A stretch of 64,000 nucleotides of DNA, from NCBI GenBank assembly GCA_950097015.1, contig CATNEN010000007.1, forward strand, positions 12,710,001 through 12,774,000, in the 5' to 3' direction. Positions within the stretch are counted from its first letter, which is position 1; each line of letters opens with the position of its first letter. Position numbers and translations under genes: made by a program. The DNA is from Macrostomum hystrix (Eukaryota; Animalia; Platyhelminthes). The notes below the pieces were generated by a model, which had not been told where the DNA came from, ran no database searches, and saw only the letters and a list, made by a program, of their open reading frames with translations. Below, piece after piece: positions 1,060 to 44,695 of the stretch.

Positions 1060-4000
1060 ATGAGCTCCCGGCTCAGGTGCTCACAGTCGGCGTTCTTCAA
1101 TCGGGCATTCGAGCTGAGCCACATCGAGGAGGGTGAGCGCCTCGAGGACCAATATGGTCCTTGAACTGGAGCGAATGCTCTGGCTGGAAGGAGCAGTTGA
1201 TAATGCAGCTAGAGAGAGCAGAGGGGAGCTGAGAGAGAGCGGGGGGAGCTGAGAGAGAGCGGAGGGGAGCTGAGAGATAGCGGAGCGGAGCTGAGAGAGA
1301 GCGGAGGGAGCTGAGAGAGAGCGGGGGGAGCTAAGAGAGAGCGGAAGGAGCTGAGAGAGAGCGGAGGGGAGCTGAGAGAGACGGAGGGGAGCTGAGAGAG
1401 AGCGGAGGGAGCTGAGAGAGATCGGAGCGGAGCTGAGAGAGAGCGGAGGGAGCTGAGAGAGAGCTGGGGGAGCTAAGAGAGAGCGGAGGGAGCTGAGAGA
1501 GAGCGGAGGGGAGCTGAGAGAGAGCGGAGGGGAGCTGAGAGAGAGCGGAGGGGAGCTAGAGAGAGCGGAGGGAGCTGAGAGAGAGCGGAGGGGAGCTGAG
1601 AGAGAGCGGAGGGGAGCTGAGAGAGAGCGGAGGGGAGCTAGAGAGAGCGGAGGGGAGCTGAGAGAGAGCGGAGGGGAGCTGAGAGAGAGCGGAGGGGAGC
1701 TAGAGAGAGCGGAGGGGAGCTGAGAGAGAGCGGAGGGGAGCTGAGAGAGAGCGGAGGGGAGCTAGAGAGAGCGGGGGAGCTGAGAGAGATCGGAGGGGAG
1801 CTGAGAGACAGCGGAGGGGAGCTGAGAGAGAGCGGAGGGGAGCTGAGAAGGCTAGGAGCCGGCAGTACTTAGTGGAGGCGAAGGCGCGGGCATGCGGAAC
1901 GGTCCGAGGCCTGATAAGATCACTAGAAAAAGTGATTAAATCAGCGACCTGCCTTTGACTGCACACTAGCTGGAGCAGAAATCCCAAAGTGCGATCGCGC
2001 GGCCCGAGGCAGCAGAAATTCAGTTCCCTCTCCGCAATCACTGGCTTCCCCCTATCCGTGCTCACAGCCCGTGCGCTGCTGCCGCCGGCAATTGCTGCTG
2101 TTGAATGGCTGGCAGCGGTAGGGAAACAGAGGGACTGAGTTCGGGGCCTGCACTGAGCGGAGCGATGCACTTTTAATGCGGCAAGTGCGCCTCCGTCCCC
2201 CAGCTAGACAGGTGGGGCTTTCGGCGGGCTTCGAGACAGCTTTTAACAAAGGCCTGGCGGGGACAAAAGGAATGAATAGGCTTAGGTGACAGACTGCGGG
2301 CTCGGCCTCCGCTGTGAGGCTGCGCGAACTGAAAATTAGCGACACTGGCTGGCCTGTCACTAATCCTTTGAATAAACCAGCTATTCTCACGAATTCAAGA
2401 GGCCTGTAAATGCCCACATACAGTTCCTACTGTAAGAGGACATTGATTGCTCTGCTTATCAAGCCATATGCCTGGTTTATTTGCTCATTCACTTTTCTCA
2501 GTAAAGCCTGAACTGCAACTCACTGAACCTGAACTGCAACTCACTGAACCTGAACTGCAACTCACTGAACCTGAACTGCAACTTACTGAACCTGAACTGC
2601 AACTTACTGAACCTGAACTGCAACTCACTGAACCTGAACTGCAACTCACTGAACCTGAACTGCAACTCACTGAACCTGAACTGCAACTCACTGAACCTGA
2701 ACTGCAACTCACTGAACCTGAACTGCAACTCACTGAACCTGAACTGCAACTCACTGAACCTGAACTGCAACTCACTGAACCTGAACTGCAACTCACTGAA
2801 TTCGCAGAAACCCATTGCCTGGTCGCTGGCCATGATGGCCCTCAGTCAGCTGCCACTGCCGCTGCTAAAGACGCTCTTGCTGCCTCAACGTCGACTTTTG
2901 CTACGGACGCTGCGGGCGTGTCCCGAAGCCCCAGCGACCTACTGCAGGTGGAGCTCCGCTGCGTTGACCGCCGCCGCCGCTCGCAGCAGTCCATGGGCGG
3001 CTGCAGTATCGGTGGAGGTCCCGCTGTGCAGCTGGCGGTGCCGCTGCCCGGAACTCAGGGGCAGCCGCGGGGCAGCTTCTCGCAGCACTCAGCCCGCTCA
3101 GCCCGCTCCTCCATCGCCTCGGACCCCGGCATCCTCATGATGGACGTGCACCAGCCGGCGCACGCCCTGGACCCCAAGTACATGTACCACGCCTTTGTCT
3201 GCTACCACGCCTCGGACAGACAGTGGGCGCTGGGCCTCATCAAGCGGCTGGAGGCCGAGCCCTACTGCTATCGCCTCTGCTACGACATGCGCGACTTCAA
3301 CCGGACCTTCTCGCACATCCAGAATGTTGTCTGCTCCGTGATGCTGAGCCAGCGCGTCATCCTGGTGCTCAGTGGCCAGTTCGTGGCGCACAGCTGGCCG
3401 GAGCTGGAGGACGCCCTGCAGCACGCCTGCCCGCCAGCCGGCCAGCGCAAGCGCAAAATTATCCCGGTCACGCTGGGCGACTCGCTAGAGCTGCCCGACC
3501 TCATCAAGCCGCTCACCGTGCTCAGCGCCAACCACCGCAACTTTTTCGACCGCCTCCTGCTAACGCTCAAGCACGGTGAGTCCAGCCTGCGATTGGCTCT
3601 TGTTATCTGGACCATCTGGAGCTCTGTGATTGGCTTGGGGTTCTAGTAATCTCTAATCCATGAACTATGTACGTGGCCCACGGCCTTGGCCAACCATATG
3701 TCCCTATACTAAGCTTGCGATTGGCCAGTTTCTCTGACAAGATCGCACTCTAGCAGTTCTGAGCCCCGAACGCATCCCGCAGAGAACATCGTGCTGTCCG
3801 AGTCCTCCACGACTCTGTGGTCCGTGACGTCGCACTCAGCCGGCTCGGAGAACGGCCACCTGCTGGTGCTGGCCCGGGGCCGCATCGCCCGCCAGTGGAG
3901 CGCCCGGCCCGAGTTCCGGCACGCGCTGGACCAGAGCCGGCACCAGCCCTCCGTGGAGCTCGTGGACTCGTTTGTGAGTGCGGAACTGCTCAGCCGCCCT

Positions 4001-7000
4001 TTCCCCTCTCTCACCTGTTGCTGCCCTAACTACTTATTGATGCATTCATGTCTCAGATAGCCTGCCTGCCACACTGGATCTCTGCGGCTTTCAAACTGCC
4101 TGCTTTGTCTTCCACTCTCCCAATGCAGCTCGTATCAACCCATTCCCTTCCCGACCATTGCTTCATCAGTTCTGAGCATAACAACTGCTACTAAAATGCA
4201 GCGGGCCAGATGCTGCTCCCCACAGAAACTCCTTGCCAACTCGCTAATGGCGATACGCAACAGCTCACCCAGCTGCTGCTGCTGCTGCTGCTGCTGCACT
4301 CGGAACCGCTCAGAGCTTGCAGAACACGATGAAAGAATGGAGGGAGGGGGCGAGTGAGCCAGGGAAGCTGGGGCAGCGGAGTCGCTGCAGCGGCATATTA
4401 GTGCACGCCCCCCAAGCCACATCGCATCGCCTCCGAAACCAGCCCCCCCTGCTCTGACGGAGACGCGGAGTTGGGGAGGCGTCTCAGAGTCTGCAGGATG
4501 GGGCCGGCCAGACCCGCATCTCACAGGCTCAGCCGCCCAGCTTCTTCTGTACAGGGCGGCCACGGAGACGAAGATCGCCCGGAACCCGCTTGCCCGGCTT
4601 GTTTTCGTTGGCGGCCATAAAATTTAACCCGGGCCTAATGGGATTAAGGAGGCCGTGAAGCTGGTGCGTCTGAGAGTCTGAGAATGCGCCTGCTTGTGTG
4701 CTCAAATTCGCAGTCCCGCTGAACAGCTGATCAAAGTTCCAGAAACTGATGCGACATTGACAGCCAGGTAGATGGAAGCCCACTTCGCTGACTCCTGAGC
4801 ACACACGCACACAGATTCTGTACGCAGGCACACGCTCACACAGGTGTACATCTGCCCTGAATTTCTTATCGTCAGGCAGTGTACACACTAACTGTGCCTT
4901 GGATGTACACACTAGCTTGCACGACAAGCCGCCCATGCGTCTCTCCACGACTGCGCCACAAATTAATGTGGCCTCACCGCGGAATCGAGCTCAGGACCTT
5001 GGTGCGAGAGACAGACGCGTTAACCGCTCTGCCACTCACCCCCTAGTCAGTGGGGTGGTATTAAGTGTGGGTGCCAACACTTAAGTGGGGTAAGATAAGT
5101 CTGCTAATTTATAATACACTGTAGGGTCGATAGTTTCAATACTTCCGGATCAATTTAGACCCAACTCTGCTAGTCCACCCTGAATTGAAGCCCAACGGAA
5201 AACCGACTTCCAGTTCAGCGCCGCGGACCTCGGCGCCATGATGTCGGGCATCTTCAGCGACGGCCAGCAGCTGGACTGGCGGCTCTCGCACTGCCCATCG
5301 CTCGCCTTCCTGGCGCTGCTGTTGCTGTGGATTCTCGCCATCCTGGCCGTGCTGCTGCTGCTGCGGGAGCCTGCCAAGTGTGAGCTGCCGGCACTGCTGC
5401 GTCTCCCTTATTGAATAACTGAGGCTTGCCCTGTAACAGGCTTTGGCAATTCCTTGCAGACATCTTGTTTGTGCGCCTCGGTGTCTTCGTGCTGCCCGCC
5501 GTACTGCTGCTGGCCGGCTACTTCATCCGGTGGCGCTCCTTCAACTTCCATAAGGAGGAGGTGAGGTGGCTGTCTGGCTGGAGTGATCTGCCTGTCCTAC
5601 AGTGGGGTGGCTGTCTGGCTGGAGTGATCGGCCTGTCCTACAGTGGGGTGGCTGTCTGGCTGGAGTGATCTGCCTGTCCTACAGTGGGGTGGCTGTCTGG
5701 CTGGAGTGATCGGCCTGTCCTACAGTGGGGTGGCTGTCTGGCTGGAGTGATCGGCCTGTCCTACAGTGGGGTGGCTGTCTGGTTGGAGTGATCGGCCTGT
5801 CCTACAGTGGGGTGGCTGTCTGGTTGGAGTGATCGGCCTGTACTACAGTGGGGTGGCTGTCTGGTTGGAGTGATCGGCCTGTACTACAGTGGGGTGGCTG
5901 TCTGGCTGGAGTGATCTGCCTCCATAAGGATATGGAGGGCCTGTTTGGGAGGGCCAGTCAGAGTAGGCAGGGCCGGATTGTGAGGCTGCGAAGCTGAGAT
6001 GATGGCCTCATCAAGCGGAGCAGGCAATGGAGCTGCTGTGCCAGGCCTGCCGCGCCTAAAATTCACTTTAGGCTTCCCATTCCCTGAGCAGCTCGGGGGC
6101 GCCGGAGCTGGCTGTGTGGCCGGCTCAGCGGCTGGGGAAATTTGGCAGTGCGGGAAGTCAACGCGGGCCAAGTTAGAGTAATTGATCCACCATCAAGTTT
6201 TCCTCGGCACAGTCGCCGCGCTTCGCCCGCCTCAATCATTGAGAATCATTGAGAATCATTGAGAAGACGGGGCCGGGGGAGAAAGTGGCCGGGAAAGGCT
6301 CGCGCTGGGCAAGTCAAAGCCGAGCATTTCATCTGCAGCACTAGTGAGGCTTCTCTATCAAGAGAGGCATCAGGAGAGGCACGGCCTCTAAACCTCCCAT
6401 TTCTCGTTTGAATCCCCCGGCCGCACATCCGATGGGCTTGAAGGGAGGCCAGGAAGGACTTGGGCGGGACGCGGATTGCAGTGGCCGGCCTCTGAAACCC
6501 GCAGCTATCCAGACGGATCTTCATGAACACGGTGCGGGCCAATGCCCTGCTCTATGCCAGCCGGCGGCCCTTCATTGTGTCTACCTTCCACTTCAAGAAG
6601 GACGACAGCTACCAGGTCAGGCCTCGCTTCCGTCCAATCATGCTCAGAATCGCTGCTGTGAGGTCACGGATCTCAACTTGCCTTTCCATTTCACCCCTTC
6701 GCTGCAGGTTTTTCTGATGTATTACAACCCGGAGGAGTGCGTGGTGAGTGGTGGGACTGGCTGTGACATTCGCGGGCTTTGTTACTGCCTGATTAAAAGT
6801 GCACTGGATTGCAAATCTACCCCCTTGCAGCTTCGGGTGTTTGAGTAGACTGGATTGCTAATCTACCCCATTGCAGCTTCGGGTGTTTGAATAGACTGGA
6901 TTGCAAATCTACCCCCTTGCAGCTTCGGGTGTTTGAGTAGACTGGATTGCTAATCTAGCCCCTTGCAGCTTCGGGTGTTTGAGTAGACTGGATTGCTAAT

Positions 7001-10000
7001 CTAGCCTATTGTTGCTTCGGGTGTTTGAGTAGACTGGATTGCTAATCTAGCCCCTTGCAGCTTCGGGTGTTTGAGTAGACTGGATTGCTAATCTAGTCCC
7101 TTGCCGCTTCGGGTGTTTGAGTAGACTGGATTGCTAATCTAGCCTATTGCAGCTTCGGGTGTTTGAGTAGACTGGATTGCTAATCTAGTCCCTTGCAGCT
7201 TCGGGTGTTTGAGTAGACTGGATTGCTAATCTAGCCTATTGCAGCTTCGGGTGTTTGAGTAGACTGGATTGCTAATCTACCCCTTTGCAGCTTCGGGTGT
7301 TTGAGTAGACTGGATTGCTAATCTAGCCCCTTGCAGCTTCGGGTGTTTGAGTAGACTGGATTGCTAATCTAGCCTATTGTTGCTTCGGGTGTTTGAGTAG
7401 ACTGGATTGCTAATCTAGCCCCTTGCAGCTTCGGGTGTTTGAGTAGACTGGATTGCTAATCTAGTCCCTTGCCGCTTCGGGTGTTTGAGTAGACTGGATT
7501 GCTAATCTAGCCTATTGCAGCTTCGGGTGTTTGAGTAGACTGGATTGCTAATCTACCCCCTTGCAGCTTCGGGTGTTTGAGTAGACTGGATTGCTAATCT
7601 AGTCCCTTGCAGCTTCGGGTGTTTGAGTAGACTGGATTGCTAATCTAGCCTATTGCAGCTTCGGGTGTTTGAGTAGACTGGATTGCTAATCTACCCCCTT
7701 GCAGCTTCGGGTGTTTGAGTAGACTGGATTGCTAATCTAGCCCCTTGCAGCTTCGGGTGTTTGAGTAGACTGGATTGCTAATCTAGCCTATTGTTGCTTC
7801 GGGTGTTTGAGTAGACTGGATTGCTAATCTAGCCCCTTGCAGCTTCGGGTGTTTGAGTAGACTGGATTGCTAATCTAGTCCCTTGCCGCTTCGGGTGTTT
7901 GAGTAGACTGGATTGCTAATCTAGCCTATTGCAGCTTCGGGTGTTTGAGTAGACTGGATTGCTAATCTAGTCCCTTGCAGCTTCGGGTGTTTGAGTAGAC
8001 TGGATTGCTAATCTAGCCTATTGCAGCTTCGGGTGTTTGAGTAGACTGGATTGCTAATCTACCCCTTTGCAGCTTCGGGTGTTTGAGTAGACTGGATTGC
8101 TAATCTAGCCCCTTGCAGCTTCGGGTGTTTGAGTAGACTGGATTGCTAATCTAGCCTATTGTTGCTTCGGGTGTTTGAGTAGACTGGATTGCTAATCTAG
8201 CCCCTTGCAGCTTCGGGTGTTTGAGTAGACTGGATTGCTAATCTAGTCCCTTGCCGCTTCGGGTGTTTGAGTAGACTGGATTGCTAATCTAGCCTATTGC
8301 AGCTTCGGGTGTTTGAGTAGACTGGATTGCTAATCTACCCCCTTGCAGCTTCGGGTGTTTGAGTAGACTGGATTGCTAATCTAGTCCCTTGCAGCTTCGG
8401 GTGTTTGAGTAGACTGGATTGCTAATCTAGCCTATTGCAGCTTCGGGTGTTTGAGTAGACTGGATTGCTAATCTACCCCCTTGCAGCTTCGGGTGTTTGA
8501 GTAGACTGGATTGCTAATCTAGCCCCTTGCAGCTTCGGGTGTTTGAGTAGACTGGATTGCTAATCTAGTCCCTTGCAGCTTCGGGTGTTTGAGTAGACTG
8601 GATTGCTAATCTAGCCTATTGCAGCTTCGGGTGTTTGAGTAGACTGGATTGCTAATCTAGTCCCTTGCAGCTTCGGGTGTTTGAGTAGACTGGATTGCTA
8701 ATCTAGCCTATTGCAGCTTCGGGTGTTTGAGTAGACTGGATTGCTAATCTACCCCTTTGCAGCTTCGGGTGTTTGAGTAGACTGGATTGCTAATCTAGCC
8801 CCTTGCAGCTTCGGGTGTTTGAGTAGACTGGATTGCTAATCTAGCCTATTGTTGCTTCGGGTGTTTGAGTAGACTGGATTGCTAATCTAGCCCCTTGCAG
8901 CTTCGGGTGTTTGAGTAGACTGGATTGCTAATCTAGTCCCTTGCCGCTTCGGGTGTTTGAGTAGACTGGATTGCTAATCTAGCCCTTTGCAGCTTCGGGT
9001 GTTTGAGTAGACTGGATTGCTAATCTAGTCCCTTGCCGCTTCGGGTGTTTGAGTAGACTGGATTGCTAATCTAGTCCCTTGCAGCTTCGGGTGTTTGAGT
9101 AGACTGGATTGCTAATCTAGCCTATTGCAGCTTCGGGTGTTTGAGTAGACTGGATTGCTAATCTACCCCCTTGCAGCTTCGGGTGTTTGAGTAGACTGGA
9201 TTGCTAATCTAGCCCCTTGCAGCTTCGGGTGTTTGAGTAGACTGGATTGCTAATCTAGTCCCTTGCAGCTTCGGGTGTTTGAGTAGACTGGATTGCTAAT
9301 CTAGCCTATTGCAGCTTCGGGTGTTTGAGTAGACTGGATTGCTAATCTAGCCCCTGCAACAGAGGAAGCGCGCTCTCGCACTCCAGGAGTACATTCGGCA
9401 GATTCTGCTGCGAGTGCGGACTGTCGAGTACAGGAAGCTGGCGAGCCTGCTGGCGGTGTACACCCTGGACGCCGACTACCTGCGAGGAGTGAGTGCTGGC
9501 GCATTCTTGAGTACGAGCTACAGCTTGAGTACACTGAGCTCCAGACTCTGCGATGTTGAATTCGATCTTTTTTTTAGATCCATTCATTTAGCCTCACCCC
9601 GATCCATTCACTGGGGAAATCGAGCGGGTGGAGATTCTCCCAGTGGCAAGCCCTTGGCACAGCGTGGGTTGAGAGCAGCGAGGCACCCAAGTAGAGAATG
9701 AAGGAACGCGGGAGAGTGCGATGGAAGCTGGGATCAAGATAGATTGTTCCCACTGAAGCCTATTCTTCACTGAGTGCCGCGAAACTTCGATACCCGGGTG
9801 GCCAGCTAGCCAGAAAGTCTTGAGCCGCCCGCCATCCGTCATCGGGCAGCTCCTTACAGCTGTCCTTCTGTACTTTCTTCTAAAAGGTATTTCCCTGCAC
9901 TAGAACCATAGCCGAAGTCCACCTTTGTCAGGATTTAAATTGGTGCACAAATAGGCAATGTCTACTCTCGCAACCCCCGAAACGCTGGCTCGGCAGCACC

Positions 10001-10404
10001 GGCTTGAAGAGCGGATCGCCGTGATGATGTGCGGCGCCTACGGCCTGGAGCTGGCCACCAAGAAGCTTCCGGCGCCTATCGAGCAGCGGCACACGCGCAA
10101 GCGGCAGTGCCTGTGCCAGTTCGTGGAGGAGTTCCTAGCCGCCTACCTGCCCATGCTGCAGCACTCCGAGTCCTTCACTGTGCAGCACATCCGCACTGTG
10201 TTTCTGCGCTACCTGAACTGCACGATCTTCCCCGACCAGGTGGTGGTGGAGACCCTCGGCTTGGTGTGTCCTAGCGACCTGGAGGCCGAGGATCTCACGC
10301 GTGAGGGGAAGCGCCGGCGGCTGGAAGTCAACTCGAAGGAAGACAAGATTGACGACCCCAGCGTGGCGGCACCGATGTCGCAGGATCAGGAAGAGGCCGT
10401 GTGA
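1060..10404 (+). CDS. TIR domain + TMEM268(DUF4481)-like two-TM fusion protein, ~651 aa, 9 exons: 1060-1132, 2808-3575, 3783-3973, 5214-5379, 5460-5560, 6505-6615, 6708-6743, 9387-9488, 9997-10404
   Basis: All introns are GT..AG with matching phases, total 1956 nt (652 codons). Exon 2 has TIR motifs YHAFVCY, LCYDMRDF, SQRVILVLSGQFVAHSWPELE, IIPV. Later exons give ENGHLLVL, two hydrophobic helices, ANALL, QVFLMYYNPEECVEYI and AVMMCGAYGLELATKKLP..RHT..CLCQFVEEFL, collinear with TMEM268 as recalled. The exon 4, 8 and 9 acceptors are less certain. AATAAA at 10597. Confidence 0.78.
1209..1848. repeat. GA-rich ~21-bp minisatellite (GAGAGAGCGGAGGGGAGCTGA) in intron 1 of the TIR gene
   Basis: Directly visible tandem array with 20-21 bp units. 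Confidence 0.95.
2507..2800. repeat. 21-bp minisatellite (CCTGAACTGCAACTCACTGAA) x14
   Basis: Near-perfect tandem array ending just before the CAG acceptor at 2805-2807. Confidence 0.95.
5566..5920. repeat. 41-bp intronic minisatellite (GTGGCTGTCTGGCTGGAGTGATCGGCCTGTCCTACAGTGGG), ~8.5 copies
   Basis: Period 41 (5566, 5607); starts immediately after the exon 5 donor. Confidence 0.95.
6803..9357. repeat. 46-bp intronic minisatellite (TAGACTGGATTGCTAATCTAGCCCCTTGCAGCTTCGGGTGTTTGAG), ~55 copies
   Basis: Period 46 (6846, 6892); fills intron 7 of the TIR-TMEM268 gene. Confidence 0.97.
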
Positions 10405-16592: not shown

Positions 16593-19500
16593 ATGTCTTC
16601 AATATTTCTGGGGCAAATAGCGGCCCTGGATGGGCTTCGTTTTGAGGAACGAATGAATTTCTACGAGCAGCTTTCTATGCGACTGATGAGCAAGAATCTT
16701 GTAGATGAGCTCGCTGCAAGTTCAACTGAAGGCCGTGTCAAGTTTTGGAGTCAGTCATTGCAGAACTTATCGCGCTCTGCCTATCAGGACTTTAACCAGC
16801 TCAAGAAAGTCAGCGACCAACGAGGGCCACAACATGTCGTTGTAGTTAGAAAAAAGAAAGCCATCCTGGAAGCCATAAAAAAGCTTTTCAGCGGATGTCG
16901 CTCTTCTGGTTGTGCAAAGAACACGGAAATTGTGACCTTTTTTATAACAGTTTTATCCGACTCCAGTCTACGCGCAATGATAGGAGAGGACTATGCTTCG
17001 TTTCTCGATTCTTGTGTGTTCAGCTGCAAAGAATTTGTTTGCCATGTGTCAGACTCCGTGATAGAGAGCATTCACAATAGTCTCCAGGCAAGGTTGGAGA
17101 CAAAGTTTTGTTCCAAGTATTTGTCACTGTTCTCTCAACTTGTGATTTTGAGTTCTGAGCGTAGCTGTCTTTTTGTAGATGCTTCAGTGCTTGCGAATTG
17201 GCTAGTTGCCACCGTTCAGGACAAAGACGAACGACTATTCCATCGAATGATCAATGCCGTCGACTGCTTGATATCTCATGATTACTTTGCTGTCTTTTTT
17301 TCTAAGATATGCGCCTTCGCGCAAAGTCTATTTCGGTGCTACGAGCAGTTCTTTTCGTCATTCATGACTACGACTCACGAAGCTGTCTGTTCCTTCTTCT
17401 ACCAGTTTTTTAGCGCACTGGCTACCAATCGAGAAGTACAAGAGAATTGCACTGAGCTGGTGCTTGATCTGCTTAATCTGCAGCAACCCATGTTGCGACT
17501 AATCATTCATTTGCGTGAAGAAAAATTTGTTTCAAGTGTTCGATTCCACAGAGCTGACAAAGCCAACGACTTTCCAGTCTTCTACCGTTTGCTTGCCTTG
17601 CTAACCACCTCTGGACTAAGCCATGATGGCACACTTGGCACAGATGCAGCACTTTGCCACCGCAACAAACGGCCAAAAAGTTCTTCTGCTCTAGAAGAGG
17701 CATGCGACAGCATTGAATCTGCGAGCACTGACGACGTTGCTATAATTCTTGACTTGAAAAGGATTCGTGGCCTACTTGAGACAAAAAGTGTACCAAACGC
17801 AAGTGTGAAACGTCTTCAGAGTACACTTACCCAGATTCAGAACATGCATAAAGTCGATGTTATTGTATCGCTACAAATTAGCCTTTTAATCGACTGTCTT
17901 CTAAAGTGGAACGTTCAGTTTGATGAGGACTTCATGGAGTCAATCTGGAAATTTTCTTTTAGCTTGATGTCTAGAAAGAGTTTCCGGCAACAATCTTTTT
18001 TACTTTGTGAAGCTCTCTCGACATCTTTCATTAAGGACGCAAATTCTGCTGTCGTGAGCTGGCTTCTATTTGCTTTTGAACAGAGTCTTTCCGCAAGACC
18101 AGCTTATATTCCGTTGAAGGATTTTTGTCACATTGTTAATGTTTGCACTCGACAAATAAATCGAGATGCGCCATGTGACAATGCGACCGACCGAAATTGC
18201 TTTTGCTTATCCGACTCAAACCTACTGAAGATCTCTGAAGTCATCGAGTCTACACTCCAGGACTGCAAACCATCTAACTTTAACGAGTTCGTCGACATAA
18301 CGATTTCTTCTGCGTTCCTTCACTGCTGCAACATGATTGCGAATGAAGAGGTTATTGCTCATACTCTCTCGTCGTTGATCAGGACTGGAAACTGTCTGAG
18401 TGATAAATGCGACCTCTACTACTTTGCTGACCAGCTTGGAGATTTCGTCAAAGTTTTGCAACCTTTTCTAAACAGTGGTGCATCTCAGCTCATCAGATCA
18501 TTTCTCCAGGAAGCAAAAGTAATGTTCTTCAATCTTCTGACCACGAATGGCGTCAGTGAACGAGACTCAACCGTTTTAAGGCTTGAAGACGAAGTCGACT
18601 TTTCACCATCATGTGACGACACGCTTTCTGCTAACGATTTCACTTCACCATGCAACTTTGCTGTCAATAGGCAAGAACGGCTGCGCCACTCTCTTCTTAA
18701 AGCCTATCTTCGACTGACAACTTCTTTGAACTATCAAAACTATGAAGAAGTCACGGAAAGCTTAAAAGTCATTACCCAAGGCTTAAGTTTTCAAACCCGC
18801 AGTTCTGACTTATACTCATTTGTCGTGTTTTTTGTGAACGATTTTATTCAGTTTTCTTCATCAACTGCCAATGCGACAAATCAGTATATCATGACAACAT
18901 TTGATCTTCTCCGCTGTGGTTTTCGAAACTTCAGAAAGAATCAGCAAGTAATAGCGCAATTTTGCGAAATTCTAGCGCATTTTATTGAGAAGCTGGGAAA
19001 AACATCTCACGAAAGGCAGGAGAATTATTTAAATTTCTGTCAGGAGCTCCTTATTGTGATTATTCTAAGCCAAAATGATGTGACTTGTTGCACATCCTTG
19101 CTAAAATCGTTGTCCCATTGTGTGGTTCGCATGTGTAGGCAAAGGCCGGATCTGCTTTGTCGAGAATTCAAGGGCAAGACCTTGTTCTGCTTCGCTCTTG
19201 AACTAGTTGGACATTTTTGTCAAAGCATTGCAATGACTGCTTCAGATATTCTGAGGTGGGTTGATTGGAAGGACCCTGCTCAAAGCAACACAGTGATTGG
19301 ATTTATTAAAGGGCTGTTTTCGATTGAAGTTTCTGTTGAGGATGCAGATTTTTTAATCGATTTAAAACGCTTCAGGGTTTCGATCGCGCAACATGCATTG
19401 ACAGTAGTACTTACAACATCGCCATCATCAAAGCGTGGTCGACATTTAAACTCTGTTGTTCAGATGCATCAAAGTGGATTGCTCGATTTTAAAAGTGCTA

Positions 19501-22500
19501 AAAATGTCATCGAAGCTACTGTTGCAAGTAGCCGTGACTACGCAACCAAACTATACATCATAGTTTGCCTGTCAGAATGGTTAGCGAGCAACAAACTTTC
19601 TCTGTTTCCTGTCACAATTTTTGATTACTCTTCTGTCCAACAGTTCGTTTCGGAGTGCCTTTATGAGTGCATTAGCGCCGCTGTTCAAATTAATTTGAGC
19701 GTTCAACAAGTAGCTGACATCGCATCCCAACCTGCAAAGCAGATACTTAAGTCCTGCCAAACTTCTGTATTTGCTCCCACATTCACGCGGTGCTTTCTTA
19801 GTAAAGATGCTAGCTCTGTGGGTCGCCTTAAGACCGCGATCAGCTTCCCTAACGGCCGCGATGAATCCACTTGCCGAGATTTAGGAAGATTCCTCATGAC
19901 TGCTTGCTGCTTTTTGCCTTGCAACCTTGCTGTCGAAGGGAATACAATTGAAGAGCTCATCAAGTTTTGCTGTTTCTCTATATCGAATAGTCAAACTAGC
20001 AATCCCCTAGAACCATTTGTAAAAGGTGGATCAGTGAGTGATCTAGTAACGAACATTTGCTGTGCGTCTATCGAGTTTTGGAGTACGTGTGATGAAGAGT
20101 TCAGTCTAGTTAGTCTTTTAAGCAGCTGCATTGTTCTTAACTATTTAGTGAAGCTTTCAACTAACAATCCTAATTTGTTTACGCTCTTGGACTTTCGCCA
20201 GCTTCTTAATGTTCTTTTAATGGCTGCACAGAAACTAGCTGGTAATTCCAATGTATCCAACCGACATGCAGTACTGTCTTGCTTTGATTCGACTCTCTTG
20301 GCAATCACTACTTTATTGGAGAACTCTGTGCTTCCAGAACGTTTTAACGGAAGCCTAATTGTCGTAAATGTTCTCGCCAATCTGCGTCAGAATACCATGA
20401 CCAACTCTCAATTGCATCAAATATCGAAAATTTTGAGTTGTTTTCTAAGACTTTCGAATGAAAGATATTGTAAAGAAATAATTTCTGAGCTCGATTTGCC
20501 TATGCTCATAGCAGAGAGCTCACTCTGTGGTTCGATCTTTTCTGCTCTGGTCAGCAAAGCCAGTATTTTCAAAGTCATAAACGCCGTTTTTAATTCCTAC
20601 TCATCGATTAGCGTCAGTTCCTATTTAAAGTCGACTGGCTGGTTTGGTTTCGTTACAGCTCTAGAGCAGAGGCTTGAAGCATCTGAAACAGTTGAACATC
20701 ACGAAATGATTGTTCGAATCGCTAAGGCTTTCCATCAAATAACAGTTGACGGAGTTATTAAAGATTACAAAAGCTTTGATCTGGCTGAATCGACCTCGCA
20801 CACGATGTTATCTGCAAAGCTTATGTGTGGAGGTTGTCTTTTGCACAAGAACTGTCAGTTTTCTCAGCAGCTATTTGTGATTAAAGTTCTTATCAATAGC
20901 ACATTTAGCCAAGTTGTGGAAGAAAAAGAGGCCGCAATAGTGTGCTTGCAGAAATTAATGCAGACTGATCTAGCTAGGTCTGCTGTAAAGCACACGGAAG
21001 ACGCTGAGGTTCGAGAAATTTGCCGAGCTATTTCGGCCCTGGGCCCTATCTGCCAGGAAAGGGAAGTACGGCGCAGGTGTGATTGGATTTCTCAAAGCGC
21101 AACGTTAAACGATGTAATATCAACATTAACAAATCATCATTTGCCTTTTATTGTTTGGATTGAAAATGTTATAAAAACGATATTCAAGACCCATTCTTTG
21201 TCCAGCAGTTTTGTCTTGGAGCTGCAATATTTGGTTGGTTTTTCAGTTCGGTTCTGCGAATCGATATTCTTTTGCGTTCTTTCAGAATTTCTTTTGCAAT
21301 CACCATCGAGTGGTATCGAGAACTTTACGGAAGCGCTGTCAAGCTTTCTAGCAAATTGTCGATGTGAACGGAAATTACGGCAGTTGACCTCGTTTATTCT
21401 GTTGCTTCATTCGTCTAGAATGTTCAATGAAACTAGTCCGGAGCAGGATCGAGTATCTTTACCAAGCATACGCATTCCGTATCTTAAAGCTAGTTCTGCT
21501 TCTCTTCGGCTAAATGATGCATATTTAGCCAACCTTTTTTTGGAGTGCCACTTTTCTTCAGTTCTCACTCTTTCAGCCGAAGCTGAGACAATTCTTCTTA
21601 CACTGGTCAGCCACCTAGCCAACGAAGACGCAGTGCTAGGCTGTCAGCGCTTATTAAGCGACTACAAGACACCTCTAAATCTAAAGCACGAGCTACTCGG
21701 ATTGGAGTTTTTCGCAACTTCGGAAGAGCGAAAAGACTTTCTTGGATGTTGTCTGCAAAACTTTTCTGTTTGGACACAGCCAGATGTAGCTGGACATTCA
21801 ACGCTTTCTAATCTACCATGCGCTCGATCTACCGAAGGAGAATTTTGGAGTCATTTAAATCTTGCGAACGAGTATCTGCTTTCTGGAAATCATATGTCAG
21901 CATCGCTAATTTTAAATACTCTGGACAAAGCATCGAGTGACTTTAATCAAGTTTTTGTTGATAGCAATAGGCTTTTATTTGATTTCGTCGAGAAGCGCAC
22001 TGCTTTGAGCTGCTTTCGCCGTCTGCTAAACGCAATCGATGATAAAAGCCGTCAGGATTTGTCACTATTTTTCCTTTCCTATGCTGAAGAACAAGCGAGC
22101 AACTTCCAATTCTGTAAGCATTACAAGACATTAGCCGTTCATTGGAATTTAAATAAGACGATCCTGCAATTGTCTAAACCAGATTGCCATAACCTGCAAC
22201 AATTCGTTCACCACTGTGTTATTCTCAAAGACATATTCGTATCACTAAATTGTACAAACAAAGCGCAGTCATTCGTATCTGCTCTTTCGAGCAAACTATC
22301 TACCCAGTATTTGCCGGATTTCTTATTGCACCTAGTAAAGTTCGAAGAATCAAGTTTGTACTGGGAGACGGGCGAGAAGGATGTCGCATTGCTATTAGGC
22401 AAGCGTTGTTTAACGGCACTTGAGTCTTTCGCTACTGACAATATCTCTGTCGATGCCTATCTTAACGTAGTCCGTCGTTATTCGCAGTGGCTAAATGAGA

Positions 22501-24593
22501 GCAAGTGTGAAAGTGCTGACTCAATACTTGAAGACTACCTGCTCCATGCCGAACGTAAGGCAGGCACGGAGAATTTAACAAACTCGAAGTTACATTATGC
22601 AATTGCTGAATTTTCCGATGCACAGTACACATGTCTTGAAAATTACACTAAGTCTCAAGAATTTCAAGCTTGGTGTTCCGTCACGAAGCAATCCAAAGAG
22701 AATGCAATTGAGCTGATACAGGCTGGAGAGAAATCAAGGTTTACAAGTAGCCTAAATAGGCAGTCAAGAATTGACGACGATCGCATCGCTGACATTCAAC
22801 AACGCAAAGCCAGTTATCTTGTCTATACTGTCACAAACCTATCCAAATGCCTCATTGGCGGTGATACTTTCGACAAGTCTGTTTACAGGTTTGTTGACTT
22901 GTGGTTGAACAACACAGATGACTCAAAAGTGGCTGATAATGTCTACGCAACGCTTAAAAAAGTGAGACTTGACAAATTCATTCCGCTATTTCCACAACTA
23001 TCCGCTCGTCTGTCAGATTCTTCTGAAAAAAGCAACTTTCAGACCACTTTGAAGATTTTTTTACTTCGCGTTAGTTGTCTACATCCGCACCATACACTAT
23101 ACAATCTATTTGCACTAGCGCATGCCAACCTAGATAGCTCACTCACTGCGAAGGCCATGCAGACACCCAGGACGTCACTTGCGTCTAGCAATCCTATAGT
23201 TGACAGAGGAAAGGCAGCGGAAAAAATTATTAAGCAAGTTTCCACATTCAATGAGTCCTTAAGCGTCATTGTTAAGCTAGTGCGTCGATTTTGCTACACC
23301 TACATTGAACTGGCAAATGTGCAGCTTCAAAATGATGGGAAGTCTAAGAGTGGCACTCTCACTTCCCTGAATACTAAGTACGATCTAACAGCTCTTCGAG
23401 ATGTTTCTGTTTTACACATTCCAACAGTAACCTTAAATATCAACCCGCAAGGAAATTATCCAAACATTCTCTACGCTGTTCAATTTATTGACAAATACAG
23501 CACCGCCGGAGGAATCAATCTGCCGAAGATTATTAGCATCCAGTGCTCGGATGGAGTCGTCAGGCGCCAACTAATAAAAGGCAACGATGATATGCGCCAA
23601 GATGCTGTGATGCAGCAAGTTTTTACAGCGGTTAATCGCCTCCTTTGTGACAGCCCGGCAGCATCAAGACGTCAGCTGTACTTATCAACGTATAAAGTGG
23701 TTCCCATGAGCCAACGCAGTGGCATTGTTGAGTGGTGCGAAGGGACTATACCTATCGCAGCGTACCTTGCTCAAGGCTCAAAATCTGCTCACGTCAGGTA
23801 TCGACCAACTGACCTGACGCCGAATGCGGCACGCACGGCTATGGAAACTAGTTCAAAGACGAGTGTTCAAAATCGGATCACGACCTTCAAAGACATTTGC
23901 AGCAAATTGCAACCCGTGTTTCGCTACTTTTTCTTTGAACGATTTGTTGAGCCGCGTGAATTTTACCTCAGACGACTGACTTATACTCGCAGTGTAGCTG
24001 CATGGAGTATGGTTGGCTACATTCTCGGACTCGGGGATAGACACCTGAATAATATACTCGTGCACAACGAGACTGCCAATCTGTTCCACATTGACCTGGG
24101 CATCGCATTCGACCAGGGAAGACTATTGCCAACTCCGGAGACTATCCCGTTCCGCTTGACTCGCGACATCATTGATGGTCTTGGTGTGTTAAGGGTTGAA
24201 GGCGACTTTCGTCGCGCCTGTGAAATTACTTTGGCTTTACTACGTTCATCCACTGATGTCATCCTCACAATCTGCTCCATCTTGCTTCACGACCCACTTT
24301 ATCATTGGACGCTGAGTCCGGAGCGAGCGAACGCTCTGCAACTGAACATTTCCAAACCTCGACCGCGCTATGAGCACCTGGTTGGCCCAGGGGACACAGA
24401 CATCAAAGACGCTAGCGTCCCACAGCGCTCCCTTTTGGCTGAGCGTGTAATGCTTCGGCTGCGGGAAAAGCTCACCGGCCGGGAGGACAACTTCTCGCTA
24501 AACGTAGAGGGCCAAGTGAGCTACCTGATTAAGCAGGCAACTGACCAGCGGAACTTGGCGCTTGTGTTTCACGGTTGGCAGCCCTATTTGTAA
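16593..24593 (+). CDS. ATM: Serine/threonine kinase ATM/Tel1 (PIKK), 2666 aa, single coding exon
   Basis: Kinase motifs GGINLPKII, KGNDDMRQDAVMQQVF, TYKVVPMSQRSGIVEW, YTRSVAAWSMVGYILGLGDRHLNNIL, HIDLGIAFDQGRLLPTPETIPFRLTRD. FATC end VEGQVSYLIKQATDQRNLALVFHGWQPYL. TAN-like N-terminus. AATAAA at 24809 and 24821. Confidence 0.95.
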   Translation: MSSIFLGQIAALDGLRFEERMNFYEQLSMRLMSKNLVDELAASSTEGRVKFWSQSLQNLSRSAYQDFNQLKKVSDQRGPQHVVVVRKKKAILEAIKKLFSGCRSSGCAKNTEIVTFFITVLSDSSLRAMIGEDYASFLDSCVFSCKEFVCHVSDSVIESIHNSLQARLETKFCSKYLSLFSQLVILSSERSCLFVDASVLANWLVATVQDKDERLFHRMINAVDCLISHDYFAVFFSKICAFAQSLFRCYEQFFSSFMTTTHEAVCSFFYQFFSALATNREVQENCTELVLDLLNLQQPMLRLIIHLREEKFVSSVRFHRADKANDFPVFYRLLALLTTSGLSHDGTLGTDAALCHRNKRPKSSSALEEACDSIESASTDDVAIILDLKRIRGLLETKSVPNASVKRLQSTLTQIQNMHKVDVIVSLQISLLIDCLLKWNVQFDEDFMESIWKFSFSLMSRKSFRQQSFLLCEALSTSFIKDANSAVVSWLLFAFEQSLSARPAYIPLKDFCHIVNVCTRQINRDAPCDNATDRNCFCLSDSNLLKISEVIESTLQDCKPSNFNEFVDITISSAFLHCCNMIANEEVIAHTLSSLIRTGNCLSDKCDLYYFADQLGDFVKVLQPFLNSGASQLIRSFLQEAKVMFFNLLTTNGVSERDSTVLRLEDEVDFSPSCDDTLSANDFTSPCNFAVNRQERLRHSLLKAYLRLTTSLNYQNYEEVTESLKVITQGLSFQTRSSDLYSFVVFFVNDFIQFSSSTANATNQYIMTTFDLLRCGFRNFRKNQQVIAQFCEILAHFIEKLGKTSHERQENYLNFCQELLIVIILSQNDVTCCTSLLKSLSHCVVRMCRQRPDLLCREFKGKTLFCFALELVGHFCQSIAMTASDILRWVDWKDPAQSNTVIGFIKGLFSIEVSVEDADFLIDLKRFRVSIAQHALTVVLTTSPSSKRGRHLNSVVQMHQSGLLDFKSAKNVIEATVASSRDYATKLYIIVCLSEWLASNKLSLFPVTIFDYSSVQQFVSECLYECISAAVQINLSVQQVADIASQPAKQILKSCQTSVFAPTFTRCFLSKDASSVGRLKTAISFPNGRDESTCRDLGRFLMTACCFLPCNLAVEGNTIEELIKFCCFSISNSQTSNPLEPFVKGGSVSDLVTNICCASIEFWSTCDEEFSLVSLLSSCIVLNYLVKLSTNNPNLFTLLDFRQLLNVLLMAAQKLAGNSNVSNRHAVLSCFDSTLLAITTLLENSVLPERFNGSLIVVNVLANLRQNTMTNSQLHQISKILSCFLRLSNERYCKEIISELDLPMLIAESSLCGSIFSALVSKASIFKVINAVFNSYSSISVSSYLKSTGWFGFVTALEQRLEASETVEHHEMIVRIAKAFHQITVDGVIKDYKSFDLAESTSHTMLSAKLMCGGCLLHKNCQFSQQLFVIKVLINSTFSQVVEEKEAAIVCLQKLMQTDLARSAVKHTEDAEVREICRAISALGPICQEREVRRRCDWISQSATLNDVISTLTNHHLPFIVWIENVIKTIFKTHSLSSSFVLELQYLVGFSVRFCESIFFCVLSEFLLQSPSSGIENFTEALSSFLANCRCERKLRQLTSFILLLHSSRMFNETSPEQDRVSLPSIRIPYLKASSASLRLNDAYLANLFLECHFSSVLTLSAEAETILLTLVSHLANEDAVLGCQRLLSDYKTPLNLKHELLGLEFFATSEERKDFLGCCLQNFSVWTQPDVAGHSTLSNLPCARSTEGEFWSHLNLANEYLLSGNHMSASLILNTLDKASSDFNQVFVDSNRLLFDFVEKRTALSCFRRLLNAIDDKSRQDLSLFFLSYAEEQASNFQFCKHYKTLAVHWNLNKTILQLSKPDCHNLQQFVHHCVILKDIFVSLNCTNKAQSFVSALSSKLSTQYLPDFLLHLVKFEESSLYWETGEKDVALLLGKRCLTALESFATDNISVDAYLNVVRRYSQWLNESKCESADSILEDYLLHAERKAGTENLTNSKLHYAIAEFSDAQYTCLENYTKSQEFQAWCSVTKQSKENAIELIQAGEKSRFTSSLNRQSRIDDDRIADIQQRKASYLVYTVTNLSKCLIGGDTFDKSVYRFVDLWLNNTDDSKVADNVYATLKKVRLDKFIPLFPQLSARLSDSSEKSNFQTTLKIFLLRVSCLHPHHTLYNLFALAHANLDSSLTAKAMQTPRTSLASSNPIVDRGKAAEKIIKQVSTFNESLSVIVKLVRRFCYTYIELANVQLQNDGKSKSGTLTSLNTKYDLTALRDVSVLHIPTVTLNINPQGNYPNILYAVQFIDKYSTAGGINLPKIISIQCSDGVVRRQLIKGNDDMRQDAVMQQVFTAVNRLLCDSPAASRRQLYLSTYKVVPMSQRSGIVEWCEGTIPIAAYLAQGSKSAHVRYRPTDLTPNAARTAMETSSKTSVQNRITTFKDICSKLQPVFRYFFFERFVEPREFYLRRLTYTRSVAAWSMVGYILGLGDRHLNNILVHNETANLFHIDLGIAFDQGRLLPTPETIPFRLTRDIIDGLGVLRVEGDFRRACEITLALLRSSTDVILTICSILLHDPLYHWTLSPERANALQLNISKPRPRYEHLVGPGDTDIKDASVPQRSLLAERVMLRLREKLTGREDNFSLNVEGQVSYLIKQATDQRNLALVFHGWQPYL

Positions 24594-42301: not shown

Positions 42302-42604
42302 TCACAGCGTTGTTTCAATTTCATAGTTTAAATAAATCTTCATTTGCTGCCGCAACAACAGAATTTGCTGTTGTTGTTGCTGCTGCTGTTGCTCCTGCTG
42401 TTGCTGCTGCTGTTGCTGCTGCTGTTGCTGCTGCTGTTGCTGCTGCTGTTGCTGCTGCTGTTGCTGCTGCTGTTGCTGCTGCTGTTGTTGATGCTGCTGC
42501 TGTTGCTGTTGTTGCTCTTGTCGTGGTTGTTGTTGCTGCTGCTGCTGCTGTTGTGGCTGCTTTTGTTCTTTCTTCTGCTGCTGCTCTTGTTGTATTTGTT
42601 GCCC

Positions 42605-42649
<45 letters not shown>

Positions 42650-44695
42650 CTGCTGTTGTTGTTCGTGTTGGTGCTGGTGCTGCTGTTCTTGTTCTCGAAT
42701 GTCTTGCTGCTGTTGTGGCTGCTGTGTCTGATGTTTGTGCTGCTGAAGATGAAGGCTTCCATTCTGTTGCAGCAGCAGCGGTGGCGACTCAGTTCGCTCC
42801 TGCTGTTCCAGACGCAGCCGCCGCCTCTGCATCAGCCGAAGTGGCGGAGTGGCGACAGTACGAAGCGGCTCTGCAGTGCCTATTTGTGGTGACCCCTCCA
42901 CAATGCGTGTTGAGAGCGGTGTTGGAAGCTGCTGCTGCTGCCCGCTGGTCTGGTTCACAACATTATAGAGAAAAGCAGCTGACAGCACGGCGATCTCCGC
43001 GAGCTCGAATATGGTGATGACACTGATGCCAACCCACAGGCCCAGGATGCCGCCGATGTCTGAGAAGAGCTTCTCGAGCTCGTAGCTGCGCTCCTCGATC
43101 AGCATGCGCACCGTGAGCGTCTTCGGGTAGACCCGCACCTGCACCAGCGTGTTGCTGACGAACCGCTGAAGGTCCGTGCAGTCTGTGTCCTCCAGAGCTG
43201 CGGGGTCGTAGTTGGGGTGGGTGTCCTCCCGGCAGCTCGACACGTTCCGGTTGGATATGCCCAGAGACGTGACCAGCGCCGCGGGTGGCGTCAGGTTGCC
43301 CACCACGGCGATGTAGTCGGATAGTATGCTGCCCAGCTTCTTTATGCGGATGAGGCTGCCGCGGCTGGCAAAGGAGCGGTCCGGCCACTCGGCCAGCGCG
43401 ATCGCGGACGAGTATTCGCTGTACTGGCACTCGTTCAGGCAACGGGAAGGGCTCTGCTTCTGCGAGAAGTTGTAGGCGCACTCGGCTCTCGCGAGCCGTT
43501 CACCAATTTCCGGAAACTTCTCGATTGTCTTGGCACCAATTACCTTGACGATGAGGGCCGCGTACTTCCTCTTGCGCTCCTCGGAGAATATGCGCCACAT
43601 GCTGAGCACCAGGTTGGAGATGCTGGTGAATTGAGTCTTGTTGAAGCGACGCATGTCGAGGATGTCGTGGCAGTAGTCAGCCTTCAGCAGACGAGTCTCC
43701 TCTGCGGGCAGGAGACCCTCGATGGTGCACCGGCATGTCCTGAGCAAGTTCAGAGCGTCCTCGTTCTCGACGCAGCTGTACAGGCGGTCCTCGTACTCCT
43801 GGTGCAGGCGCAGGAACGGGTTCCAGAAGCGGCGCACGCCAGCCGGTGCGCAGGGCCGCGTATTCGTGTTAGCCAGGCGGATTTTTGCCTGCGACAGGGC
43901 GAAGTCAGTGCGCATGCCCACTGGGGCGGTGATGCCAAACTCGTGCGGGTCTGGTCGGGTGCCGCGCTGATGAACAGTCACCTGGAAGCCCTTGCTCTCC
44001 AAGCCAGTCGCCGTCTTCATGATGCGGTCCTCCTCGAAGTTTGCGTCCACCGAGGGTGGGTAGAGGACAAGGATGAGGCCCATCTCCGCGCCCGCCTTCT
44101 CCAGCTGCCGCGATGCTGGCTGGAATGTGTAGCAGTTACCGTACTCTCTATCGTAGTACAGAGTAAATTCACCGTGGCTGCATGGCTTCTGGTCGAACTC
44201 GCAGTATAACACAAAGTCCTGGGCGCGGGCGCTGACCTCGGACATGTTGAACATGTGACCGGAGGCTGTGTAAATGGCCTTGAGGAACTTCTTGCTCTCC
44301 CAGCCAAACTGGTAGCCCAGCATTGTCTGCACCACCTGCGAGTAGCGGCTGAAGGCCCGGTCCTTTGTGCGTCTGTCGTAATAGGACACGTTGTAAAGAA
44401 AGAACTTCTTCAGCATTGTGTCGCAGATCGTGACGTCCGGGAACTCGAAGCCGTTGACCTCCTGGCGCACTGTGGAGCTGACAGGATAGCTAAAGTACAG
44501 TTTAATCAGCGTTGCCGTGTGCATGGTGACGCCGCAGACGGCGCTGACGAAAATCACGAACCAGACAACGCGCACAGTCCAGTTGGAGTCCTGCTGCACC
44601 AGCTTGTTAACGCCGTGGGCAGTAGAGCTGCCAAGCAGCTGGCGCAGCCGGCCCAGCAGAACCTTGCGGCGGCCAGGCTTAGTCGTGTCCGGCAT
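42302..44695 (-). CDS. DEG/ENaC family sodium channel, FaNaC-like, 797 aa, apparently intronless, polyQ C-tail
   Basis: STAHG pre-TM1 motif, TM1, FPDVTIC, YGNCYTF, GFQVTVH, Cys-rich thumb, and TM2 LFSDIGGILGLWVGISVITIFELAE with a GIS filter. Confidence 0.92.
42365..42725 (-). repeat. CAG/CAA trinucleotide tract encoding polyQ
   Basis: TGC/TGT repeats on +, in frame with the channel ORF on -. Confidence 0.9.

Follow-up and report, generated by a model that had tools for sequence, protein, structure and literature searches.

Does the TIR domain encoded near the start of a 64,000-nucleotide stretch of the Macrostomum hystrix genome (contig CATNEN010000007.1, positions 12,710,001 to 12,774,000 of the forward strand; hereafter the window) belong to a gene of its own, or is it joined to the membrane exons that follow it, and what could a protein of such a design do? 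An initial annotation, made from the sequence, had proposed that the TIR exon is the second of nine exons of a gene for a membrane-bound TIR receptor or effector, whose downstream part resembles the two-helix membrane protein TMEM268 (Pfam family DUF4481). We found the TIR exon to be spliced to the membrane exons, the two forming one gene and one transcript chain. That TIR domain, linker and a TMEM268-type two-helix module stand together in one protein can be regarded as nearly certain. The explanation of the locus that we prefer, with moderate confidence, is that of a single-copy, expressed gene for a membrane-anchored TIR adaptor or scaffold; the adaptor mechanism as such is put forward more tentatively, and the function is one that we infer.

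The gene lies on the plus strand of the window at 1060-10404. When its nine exons were joined, the frame stayed open for about 651 codons up to the stop codon at 10402-10404; all eight introns have GT..AG borders, and the phases are consistent across the nine exons, as the initial annotation had it. The peptide blocks on which that annotation was built (REPAKY, ANALL, QVFLMYYNPEECVEYI and EERIAVMMCGAYGLELATKKLP..RHT..CLCQFVEEFL) were all found again in the same order and frame. It gave no start for exon 4, for which 5214 proved to be the sole fitting phase-0 acceptor. In our analysis the exons were searched with profiles singly, and the joined translation served for the phase check, hydropathy, local alignment and the tree. 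The exons, all on the plus strand, are as follows (positions in the window):

Exon 1 (putative), 1060-1132, plus strand: ATG at 1060 and 24 codons, GT donor at 1133; ends in phase 1, which fits exon 2.
Exon 2, 2808-3575, plus strand: AG acceptor and GT donor; a low-complexity N-terminal region, then the whole TIR domain.
TIR core within exon 2, 3194-3532, plus strand: residues 129-241 of the exon 2 translation; Pfam TIR_2.
Exon 3, 3783-3973, plus strand: flexible linker, then the start of the DUF4481-like module (NGHLL motif), which aligns with the NGQ(V/L)L block of the orthologues.
Exon 4, 5214-5379, plus strand: cytosolic segment and membrane helix 1 (about 5301-5363); ends in phase 1 within the 6-residue loop.
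Exon 5, 5460-5560, plus strand: membrane helix 2 (about 5462-5527, from hydropathy), then the basic RWR..K flank.
Exon 6, 6505-6615, plus strand: ANALL / RPFIVST block, strand 1 of a beta hairpin; N..L(Y/F)....P is conserved.
Exon 7, 6708-6743, plus strand: 12-codon micro-exon VFLMYYNPEECV.
Exon 8, 9387-9488, plus strand: helical segment (KL..L..VYT....YL) with AG/GT sites and phase 0/0; aligns with all orthologues.
Exon 9, 9997-10404, plus strand: C-terminal DUF4481 signature ER.AVM..Y....LP...QRHT...CLCQF.EEFL..YL, then ..YLNC and the stop codon.

The fused gene is present in single copy in the genome, of which we scanned 220,453,370 bases in 42 contigs; the published M. hystrix assembly has about 220 Mb in 42 contigs (PMC10468722). 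Among the orthologues described below, the N-terminus is not conserved. An open reading frame upstream of exon 1 (326-979) was considered as coding sequence and rejected, as it has no family match and looks non-coding. Several AG acceptor-like sites (aatag, cag repeats) lie at 1020-1059, directly 5' of the ATG at 1060; given leader trans-splicing, they could be the candidate 5' acceptor of the gene.

Whether the predicted exons are really joined was answered by transcript contigs. These came from three runs (X1-X3), all belonging to one study, and were examined over positions 2801-6800, a stretch chosen to avoid the 2.5-kb tandem array of intron 7. Each run holds about one quarter of the sampled words, which is the exonic share of this stretch. 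Because the contigs were confined to exons, the depth in the introns being zero apart from one repeat, we take them for transcript assemblies. The joint 3575/3783, through which the initial annotation had continued the TIR exon into the membrane exons, was seen in all three runs. The joint 3973/5214 was found in two runs, 5379/5460 in one, and both 5560/6505 and 6615/6708 in three, in the last case with only about 40 letters beyond the joint. All five coincide exactly with the predicted GT..AG sites, and the joints listed for the transcript contigs include no rival one into exon 3 or 4. Single contigs link exon 2 to exon 3, exon 3 to exon 4 (reaching 8 letters beyond 5379), exons 3 to 6, and exons 5 to 7 with further sequence after them, so that overlapping contigs form a chain from exon 2 to past exon 7. 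Contig coverage of exon 2 extends over 2942-3574, its first 134 bases being uncovered. A contig of 1044 nt begins within exon 5 and continues for 855 nt beyond exon 6, a length that fits exons 7, 8 and 9 (36+102+408 nt) followed by about 300 nt of 3' untranslated region. The two remaining internal joints, 6743/9387 and 9488/9997, are outside the examined stretch; what supports them is the collinear alignment with the orthologues and the length of this contig.

The same design was encountered outside the flatworms. A phmmer search with exon 9 against 1.84 billion representative proteins yielded 16 matches, the best of which was the orthologue of Lineus longissimus (E 6.7e-28). The full-length members, consisting of phmmer matches and further ones from a profile search, are:

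Lineus longissimus, XP_064626799, 540 aa.
Tubulanus polymorphus, 550 aa.
Octopus bimaculoides, XP_052833621/22.
Haliotis rubra, XP_046558206.
Saccostrea cucullata, LOC134252490.
Crassostrea virginica, LOC111118802.
Magallana gigas, K1R0M7.
A transcript-derived Logan protein.

Every full-length orthologue carries an N-terminal TIR domain, and nearly all are labelled 'uncharacterized protein' in NCBI or UniProt. The spliced window model aligns with them end to end, with 38% identity to the nemertean proteins over about 530 columns. The order of the blocks is collinear: TIR, linker, NGQ(V/L)L, two helices, N..L(Y/F)....P, (Y/F)(Y/F)(N/D)...C, KL..LI.VYT, ER.AVM..Y....LP...QRHT...CLCQF.EEFL and YLNC; an RL.VF..P...G....RWR block encoded in exon 5 is also kept family-wide. 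Canonical TMEM268 was absent among the matches of the exon 9 phmmer search and of the word-index searches, which returned the fused family and unrelated TIR proteins only.

These data bear on the possibility that the locus consists of two separate genes, one TIR-only and the other TMEM268-like, or that the two were joined by an artefact of assembly or prediction. In favour of this, intron 3 (1240 bases) carries a strongly expressed repeat, a splice acceptor inside the gene could start a second message further downstream, and the contigs are short. The splice joints 3575/3783 and 3973/5214 (three and two runs) and the bridging contigs argue against it, as does the finding that the same fusion was predicted independently in seven named species and in one transcript-derived protein, collinear with the window model. 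We regard a two-gene arrangement or an artefact as very improbable.

The fused design is thus not unique to M. hystrix, it is present in NCBI and UniProt from oysters, abalone, octopus and two nemerteans. In the precomputed Pfam list the combination of TIR and DUF4481 is shown for two oysters. Because DUF4481 of most members scores below the Pfam cut-off, and only two TIR models are listed, the design has been hidden in the annotation. In the literature searched we found no paper that pairs DUF4481 or TMEM268 with TIR, bearing in mind that a survey of bivalve TIR proteins may list the family under a label of its own, and one broad TIR survey does not mention a TIR-DUF4481 design. The earlier statement that no characterised protein of this architecture is known therefore stands as far as this literature is concerned, but uncharacterised orthologues were already in the databases. 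What the locus adds is a real, uncharacterised family, in which an adaptor-type TIR is combined with a new conserved membrane module, now extended to a flatworm with transcript support.

The first part of the protein to be considered is the TIR domain. The exon 2 translation passed the cut-offs of two Pfam models, TIR_2 (PF13676; 40.4 bits, E 5e-10, cut-off 28) and TIR (PF01582; 27.0 bits, E 4.6e-6, cut-off 21.3). The nearest solved chains were those of the Toll-like receptors (TLR) TLR2 and TLR15, oyster TIR-STING, MyD88 and TLR1, with E values of about 4e-6 to 3e-5. The core motifs YRYH.F.S, LSERV..VLS and W...E are well conserved over deep divergence. The fold was studied in the Lineus orthologue (38% identity to the window protein) by means of an AlphaFold2 model, in which the flavodoxin-like TIR fold was recognised. 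VIA-align gave the highest Z, 16.3, for the TIR domains of Hydra TRR-2 (root mean square deviation 2.1 over 122 residues) and MyD88, followed by TIR-STING (15.2), IL-1RAcPb (15.0), TIRAP (14.5), TRAM (13.2) and SARM1 (13.1), and Foldseek ranked TLR1, TLR10, TLR6 and TLR2 first. Both searches were made with the whole model and returned TIR domains only. A Death domain, by which MyD88 is recognised, had no Pfam match in exon 2 or in any orthologue. The exon-by-exon Pfam search found neither leucine-rich repeats nor any other ectodomain family, of the kind expected of a Toll-like receptor. Judged from sequence and from the modelled fold, the TIR domain appears to be closest to the TLR/MyD88 (scaffold) type rather than to the enzymatic type of SARM1.

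This assignment has to be weighed against the idea that the protein is a membrane-bound NAD (nicotinamide adenine dinucleotide)-consuming effector, in which the TMEM268 module would cluster on a signal and the TIR domains would cleave NAD+, as do those of SARM1, of plants and of bacterial TIR-STING. The best Pfam model of exon 2 was TIR_2, and this model also covers bacterial and SARM1-type TIR domains. Moreover, a Glu is found four residues after the conserved Trp in the window protein, in the Lineus and Tubulanus proteins and in the Logan member, where, as we take it, SARM1 and plant TIR domains have their catalytic Glu, and the TIR of oyster TIR-STING is among the nearest solved sequences. 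This Glu is not diagnostic, however, since TLR TIR domains carry it too, and in all five mollusc members it is replaced by Gln. Receptor and adaptor TIR domains ranked first in the sequence and fold comparisons, SARM1 having a Z of 13.1 vs. 16.3 and a Foldseek E value about 1000 times weaker. An NAD-consuming effector thus seems rather improbable to us. TLR and MyD88 use a Pro-Gly pair in the BB-loop for signalling; it is missing family-wide, and in this region the mollusc clade has a different sequence from the flatworm/nemertean clade.

The second part is the membrane module. Hydropathy revealed only two strongly hydrophobic segments in the window protein, at residues ~373-394 and ~401-423. 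The loop between them, REPAKY, has 6 residues, and the second helix is followed by the basic flank RWRSFNFHK. No signal peptide was found in the joined window model. The model of the Lineus orthologue, calculated from a 22-row family alignment (mean predicted local distance difference test score, pLDDT, 75), shows a confident TIR domain at 80-213 (pLDDT mostly 80-95), a disordered linker at 214-232 and, at 233-540, the module, for the most part modelled with confidence. Its NGQ motif lies in a strand; helices 301-323 and 332-381 hold both membrane segments, and after them come a beta hairpin at 386-404 (strand 386-392) and five helices; the RHT loop at 470-479 is of low confidence. The beta strands come from the N-part and the C-part of the module alike. 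Because the loop is so short, a signal peptide is missing and both parts supply strands in the model, we place both ends of the protein in the cytosol, with no binding of an extracellular ligand. The N- and C-termini would be on the same side of the membrane, presumably the cytosolic one. The proposal of two cytosolic termini and no ectodomain is in this way supported, the sidedness being deduced from the loop and the missing signal peptide.

The word 'receptor' in the initial annotation is not: the protein has neither an ectodomain nor a signal peptide, and its TIR is N-terminal to two helices. Nor did the analysis yield evidence for the sensor or STING-like oligomerisation module that the annotation had in mind. 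One could still think of a genuine surface receptor, detecting ligands outside the cell directly as a TLR does. The protein is predicted to be membrane-bound and has a TIR domain, and flatworms are reported to lack canonical TLRs (PMC10279657, PMC7958881), with TIR proteins and downstream kinases kept (PMC7958881), which leaves such a niche. A signal peptide and leucine-rich repeat or immunoglobulin domains are all missing, only about 6 residues separate the helices, and the TIR precedes both of them instead of following a single one; we find this idea hardly credible.

Is the module related to TMEM268? Exon 9 alone matched Pfam DUF4481 (PF14800) with 15.7 bits (E 0.01, profile positions 256-293 of 293), which is below the cut-off of 25, and exons 3-8, each searched alone, had no Pfam match, being too short. 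Two orthologues passed the cut-off, those of Saccostrea (26.5 bits) and C. virginica (27.1 bits), while Lineus (23.5), Tubulanus (16.7) and M. gigas (15.5-16.3) scored below it. In the two oyster proteins that passed, two stretches were aligned, the better of which covers profile positions 67-189, i.e. the helix pair and the middle region. In seven other members the C-terminal signature was matched (profile ~233-293, mostly 246-293; E 4e-5 to 0.014). An RHT-x(4-5)-CxCQ signature is present in exon 9 of the window, in all family members and in a TIR-less copy on contig 9 of M. hystrix. A language-model look-up, which we use as a lead only, gave TMEM268/DUF4481 as the three nearest clusters of the Lineus module (residues 225-540; 0.85, 195 of 256 features), and TMEM268/DUF4481 clusters remained nearest when the last 95 residues were omitted (225-445; 0.83, 191 features). 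The conclusion that the downstream exons encode a divergent DUF4481/TMEM268 module is supported by these sequence comparisons, above all by the oyster orthologues that pass Pfam, by the C-terminal motif and by exon breaks shared with the paralogue on contig 9. The earlier expectation of profile matches held for the TIR domain and, for DUF4481, in two oyster orthologues; exon 9 of the window itself stayed below the cut-off.

The TIR-less DUF4481 locus is at contig 9:1494000-1503999 (L004). It was recognised in a six-frame scan of the genome with PF14800 (29.1 bits), and its last exon scored 30.8 bits in hmmscan. Its exons were deduced from splice motifs and open frames:

TIR-less paralogue, contig 9, predicted exons (positions within L004): 98-201, 458-614, 839-936, 3691-3780 (uncertain), 5787-5822, 5910-5972, ~6152-6346 (optional) and 8959-9141.

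A first exon was not found on reading L004, and 3691-3780, the equivalent of exon 6 of the window, is the least certain. In this model the exon with the NG motif is entered in phase 1, the exon of helix 1 ends in phase 1 inside the inter-helix loop, that of helix 2 ends in phase 0, a 12-codon phase 0/0 micro-exon (VAVLYFDPEPCL) would be the counterpart of exon 7 (VFLMYYNPEECV), and the last exon starts in phase 0 about 32 residues before RHT. These breaks and phases match those of window exons 3, 4, 5, 7 and 9. A profile of the family module matched the last exon of the paralogue (E 2e-6). Beyond this exon no significant similarity between the fused gene and the paralogue was detected by tblastn or with the family-module hidden Markov model, and the other putative contig 9 exons matched nothing in Pfam. 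Since similarity outside the last exon is insignificant, the argument from the paralogue lies in gene structure and not in scores: the shared intron positions and phases, as predicted, argue for common descent with a canonical member. The fusion itself appears to be old, dating back at least to the common ancestor of flatworms, nemerteans and molluscs.

It is useful to compare the fused protein with known systems. It resembles TMEM268 of vertebrates and arthropods in several respects: the cytosolic N-part carries an NGQ-type motif, the two adjacent membrane helices, some 60-90 residues into the domain, are separated by a loop of only a few residues, a Y(F/Y)(D/N)..(E)C block is present, and the RHT...CxCQ signature stands at the C-terminus. 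The differences are that the language-model clusters of TMEM268 carry DUF4481 only, whereas the fused protein has TIR and linker in front, and that the module of the fused family is highly diverged and its conserved sequence extends further at the C-terminus (..F..YLNC...P.....LG). TLR and IL-1R, together with Hydra TRR-2, provide the closest TIR sequences and folds; in these proteins, signal peptide, ectodomain and one helix precede the TIR, whereas here the TIR comes first and is followed by two helices. Oyster TIR-STING (PDB 6WT6/6WT7; E 5.2e-6, Z 15.2) is likewise a lophotrochozoan protein with an N-terminal TIR fused to a module of innate immunity, but its partner is the cyclic-dinucleotide binding domain of STING, which has a known ligand. 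SARM1/TIR-1 shares the TIR fold (Z 11-13), and flatworm and nemertean proteins of the family have a Glu where that of SARM1 is catalytic; the fused family differs from it in having neither ARM nor SAM domains and in the Gln of the molluscs, and SARM1 ranks below receptor and adaptor TIR domains. With TRAM (TICAM2) and TIRAP/MAL the protein would share a TIR at the cytosolic face of the membrane and the lack of a ligand-binding ectodomain. The anchors of TRAM and TIRAP are of the lipid type, a myristate or a motif binding phosphatidylinositol bisphosphate (PIP2), whereas the fused protein is predicted to be anchored by a two-helix hairpin and has a conserved cytosolic domain of about 200 residues; the identity is 13-16%. 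This parallel is meant as an analogy of working, not as membership.

On this basis the following picture can be drawn. The protein would consist of a non-conserved N-terminal region, a TIR domain of the TLR/MyD88 type, a flexible linker of about 20-25 residues and a divergent TMEM268 module, the latter made up of a cytosolic N-part, a two-helix hairpin and a cytosolic C-part that ends with RHT...CxCQ. The module may anchor the protein in the membrane and, on the cytosolic side, contact the tail of another membrane protein as its partner; the tethered TIR may assemble with other TIR proteins, such as a MyD88-like adaptor or diverged Toll-like receptors, through TIR-TIR contacts. The fusion probably arose when a TIR exon was placed, in phase 1, ahead of a TMEM268-type gene. 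Our preference for an adaptor or scaffold over a receptor stems from the missing ectodomain, from a TIR of the TLR/MyD88 type and from the binding of mammalian TMEM268 to cytosolic tails of its partners. In human TMEM268 the helices are at 104-126 and 130-152 and DUF4481 at 38-328; it is through residues 104-342 that the protein contacts the cytosolic end of ITGB4, which it protects from degradation (PMC6748091). Mammalian TMEM268 also binds and stabilises CD11b and affects bacterial clearance and anti-infectious immunity, and loss of Tmem268 was linked to enhanced TLR signalling through CD11b (PMC11169502).

The same observations on mammals lend some credit to a different role, in which the protein would mainly control, in the manner of TMEM268, how integrins or other membrane proteins are turned over, its TIR acting as a decoy or negative regulator that sequesters TIR adaptors, similarly to SIGIRR, instead of relaying a signal. 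TMEM268 stabilises ITGB4 and CD11b, its loss is tied to enhanced TLR signalling, and the family lacks the Pro-Gly of the BB-loop, on which productive TLR signalling depends. The conserved TIR core, on the other hand, argues for a selected TIR interaction, and is neutral as to whether this activates or inhibits. We consider a decoy or negative regulator unlikely.

It must be noted that several points weigh against a membrane-anchored adaptor or scaffold. The DUF4481 scores of exon 9 alone, Lineus and Tubulanus are below the cut-off (15.7, 23.5 and 16.7 bits). The family profile picks up no exon of the paralogue other than the last, so the case for homology of the upstream part is carried by the oyster matches, by the architecture and by the exon breaks, and the paralogue exons are predicted from splice motifs. 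Exon 1 and the joints 6743/9387 and 9488/9997, located outside 2801-6800, are likewise predictions. The transcript contigs are short assemblies, not single molecules, and the three runs represent one study. With the BB-loop Pro-Gly missing, the protein may have uncommon partners, or its TIR may inhibit signalling. Finally, an adaptor function of any family member is deduced from sequence likeness and analogy.

Some features of the introns deserve mention in their own right. The repeat in intron 3 (4778-5045, about 270 bases) was represented in all three runs by hundreds of transcript contigs with a summed depth in the thousands, many variant joints and loose ends. It is a highly expressed multi-copy element, possibly similar to a short interspersed nuclear element (SINE); ARAGORN and Rfam found nothing in the window, this repeat included. 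The array of intron 7 (6803-9355) has 55 copies of a 46-nt unit, each with the acceptor-like sequence 'ccccttgcag', and the last intron of the contig 9 paralogue (L004 7150-8940) contains an array of 40-nt units. The two have a 15-nt core in common, TAGATTAGCAATCCA, in opposite orientations. This core has more than 5,100 copies in the genome (reversed control 0), in tandem arrays whose units measure 22, 40 or 46 nt, among other lengths; it is a minisatellite core found across the genome and not specific to the fused gene and the paralogue. Further arrays are found at 1207-1848 (31 copies of a 21-nt GA-rich unit), at 2507-2800 (14 copies of a 21-nt unit, ending 7 bases before the acceptor of exon 2) and at 5561-5921 (8.8 copies of a 41-nt unit, beginning at the exon 5 donor). 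Use of the acceptor-like sites of the arrays in splicing was not seen within 2801-6800.

In the rest of the window, other coding stretches were noted:

16593-24593, plus strand: uninterrupted open reading frame of 2666 codons for a PI3K-related kinase (Pfam PI3_PI4_kinase, E 3e-52; C-terminal FATC).
42305-44695, minus strand: uninterrupted open reading frame of 797 codons for a DEG/ENaC amiloride-sensitive sodium channel (Pfam ASC, E 2.9e-62).
59557-60864, plus strand: middle and C-terminal domains of glycosyl hydrolase family 38 (alpha-mannosidase), probably a large exon of a longer gene.

The kinase gene is intronless over 8 kb, whereas the neighbouring fused gene has eight introns.

What does the fused gene mean for the biology of TIR proteins? 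TMEM268 is poorly understood in mammals, and was recently tied to integrin stability and to defence in sepsis (PMC6748091, PMC11169502). Because the fusion has been kept since before flatworms, nemerteans and molluscs split, TIR and TMEM268 may be working partners. Taken further, TMEM268 would serve TIR signalling as a membrane platform so far overlooked, which links integrin-type adhesion receptors to MyD88-type adaptors, and TIR and TMEM268 would be partners in animals generally. We offer this wider idea as a speculation with the odds against it. If true, it could explain the altered anti-bacterial responses and cytokines of Tmem268-null mice, and the fused protein could be a main membrane entry point of TIR signalling in flatworms. 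An ancient fusion with TIR leads to the testable prediction that TMEM268 contacts the TLR/MyD88 machinery. Invertebrate TIR proteins are numerous and mostly uncharacterised; among them, a conserved and expressed TIR protein with a membrane anchor of its own is a concrete candidate for an organiser of membrane TIR signalling in flatworms.

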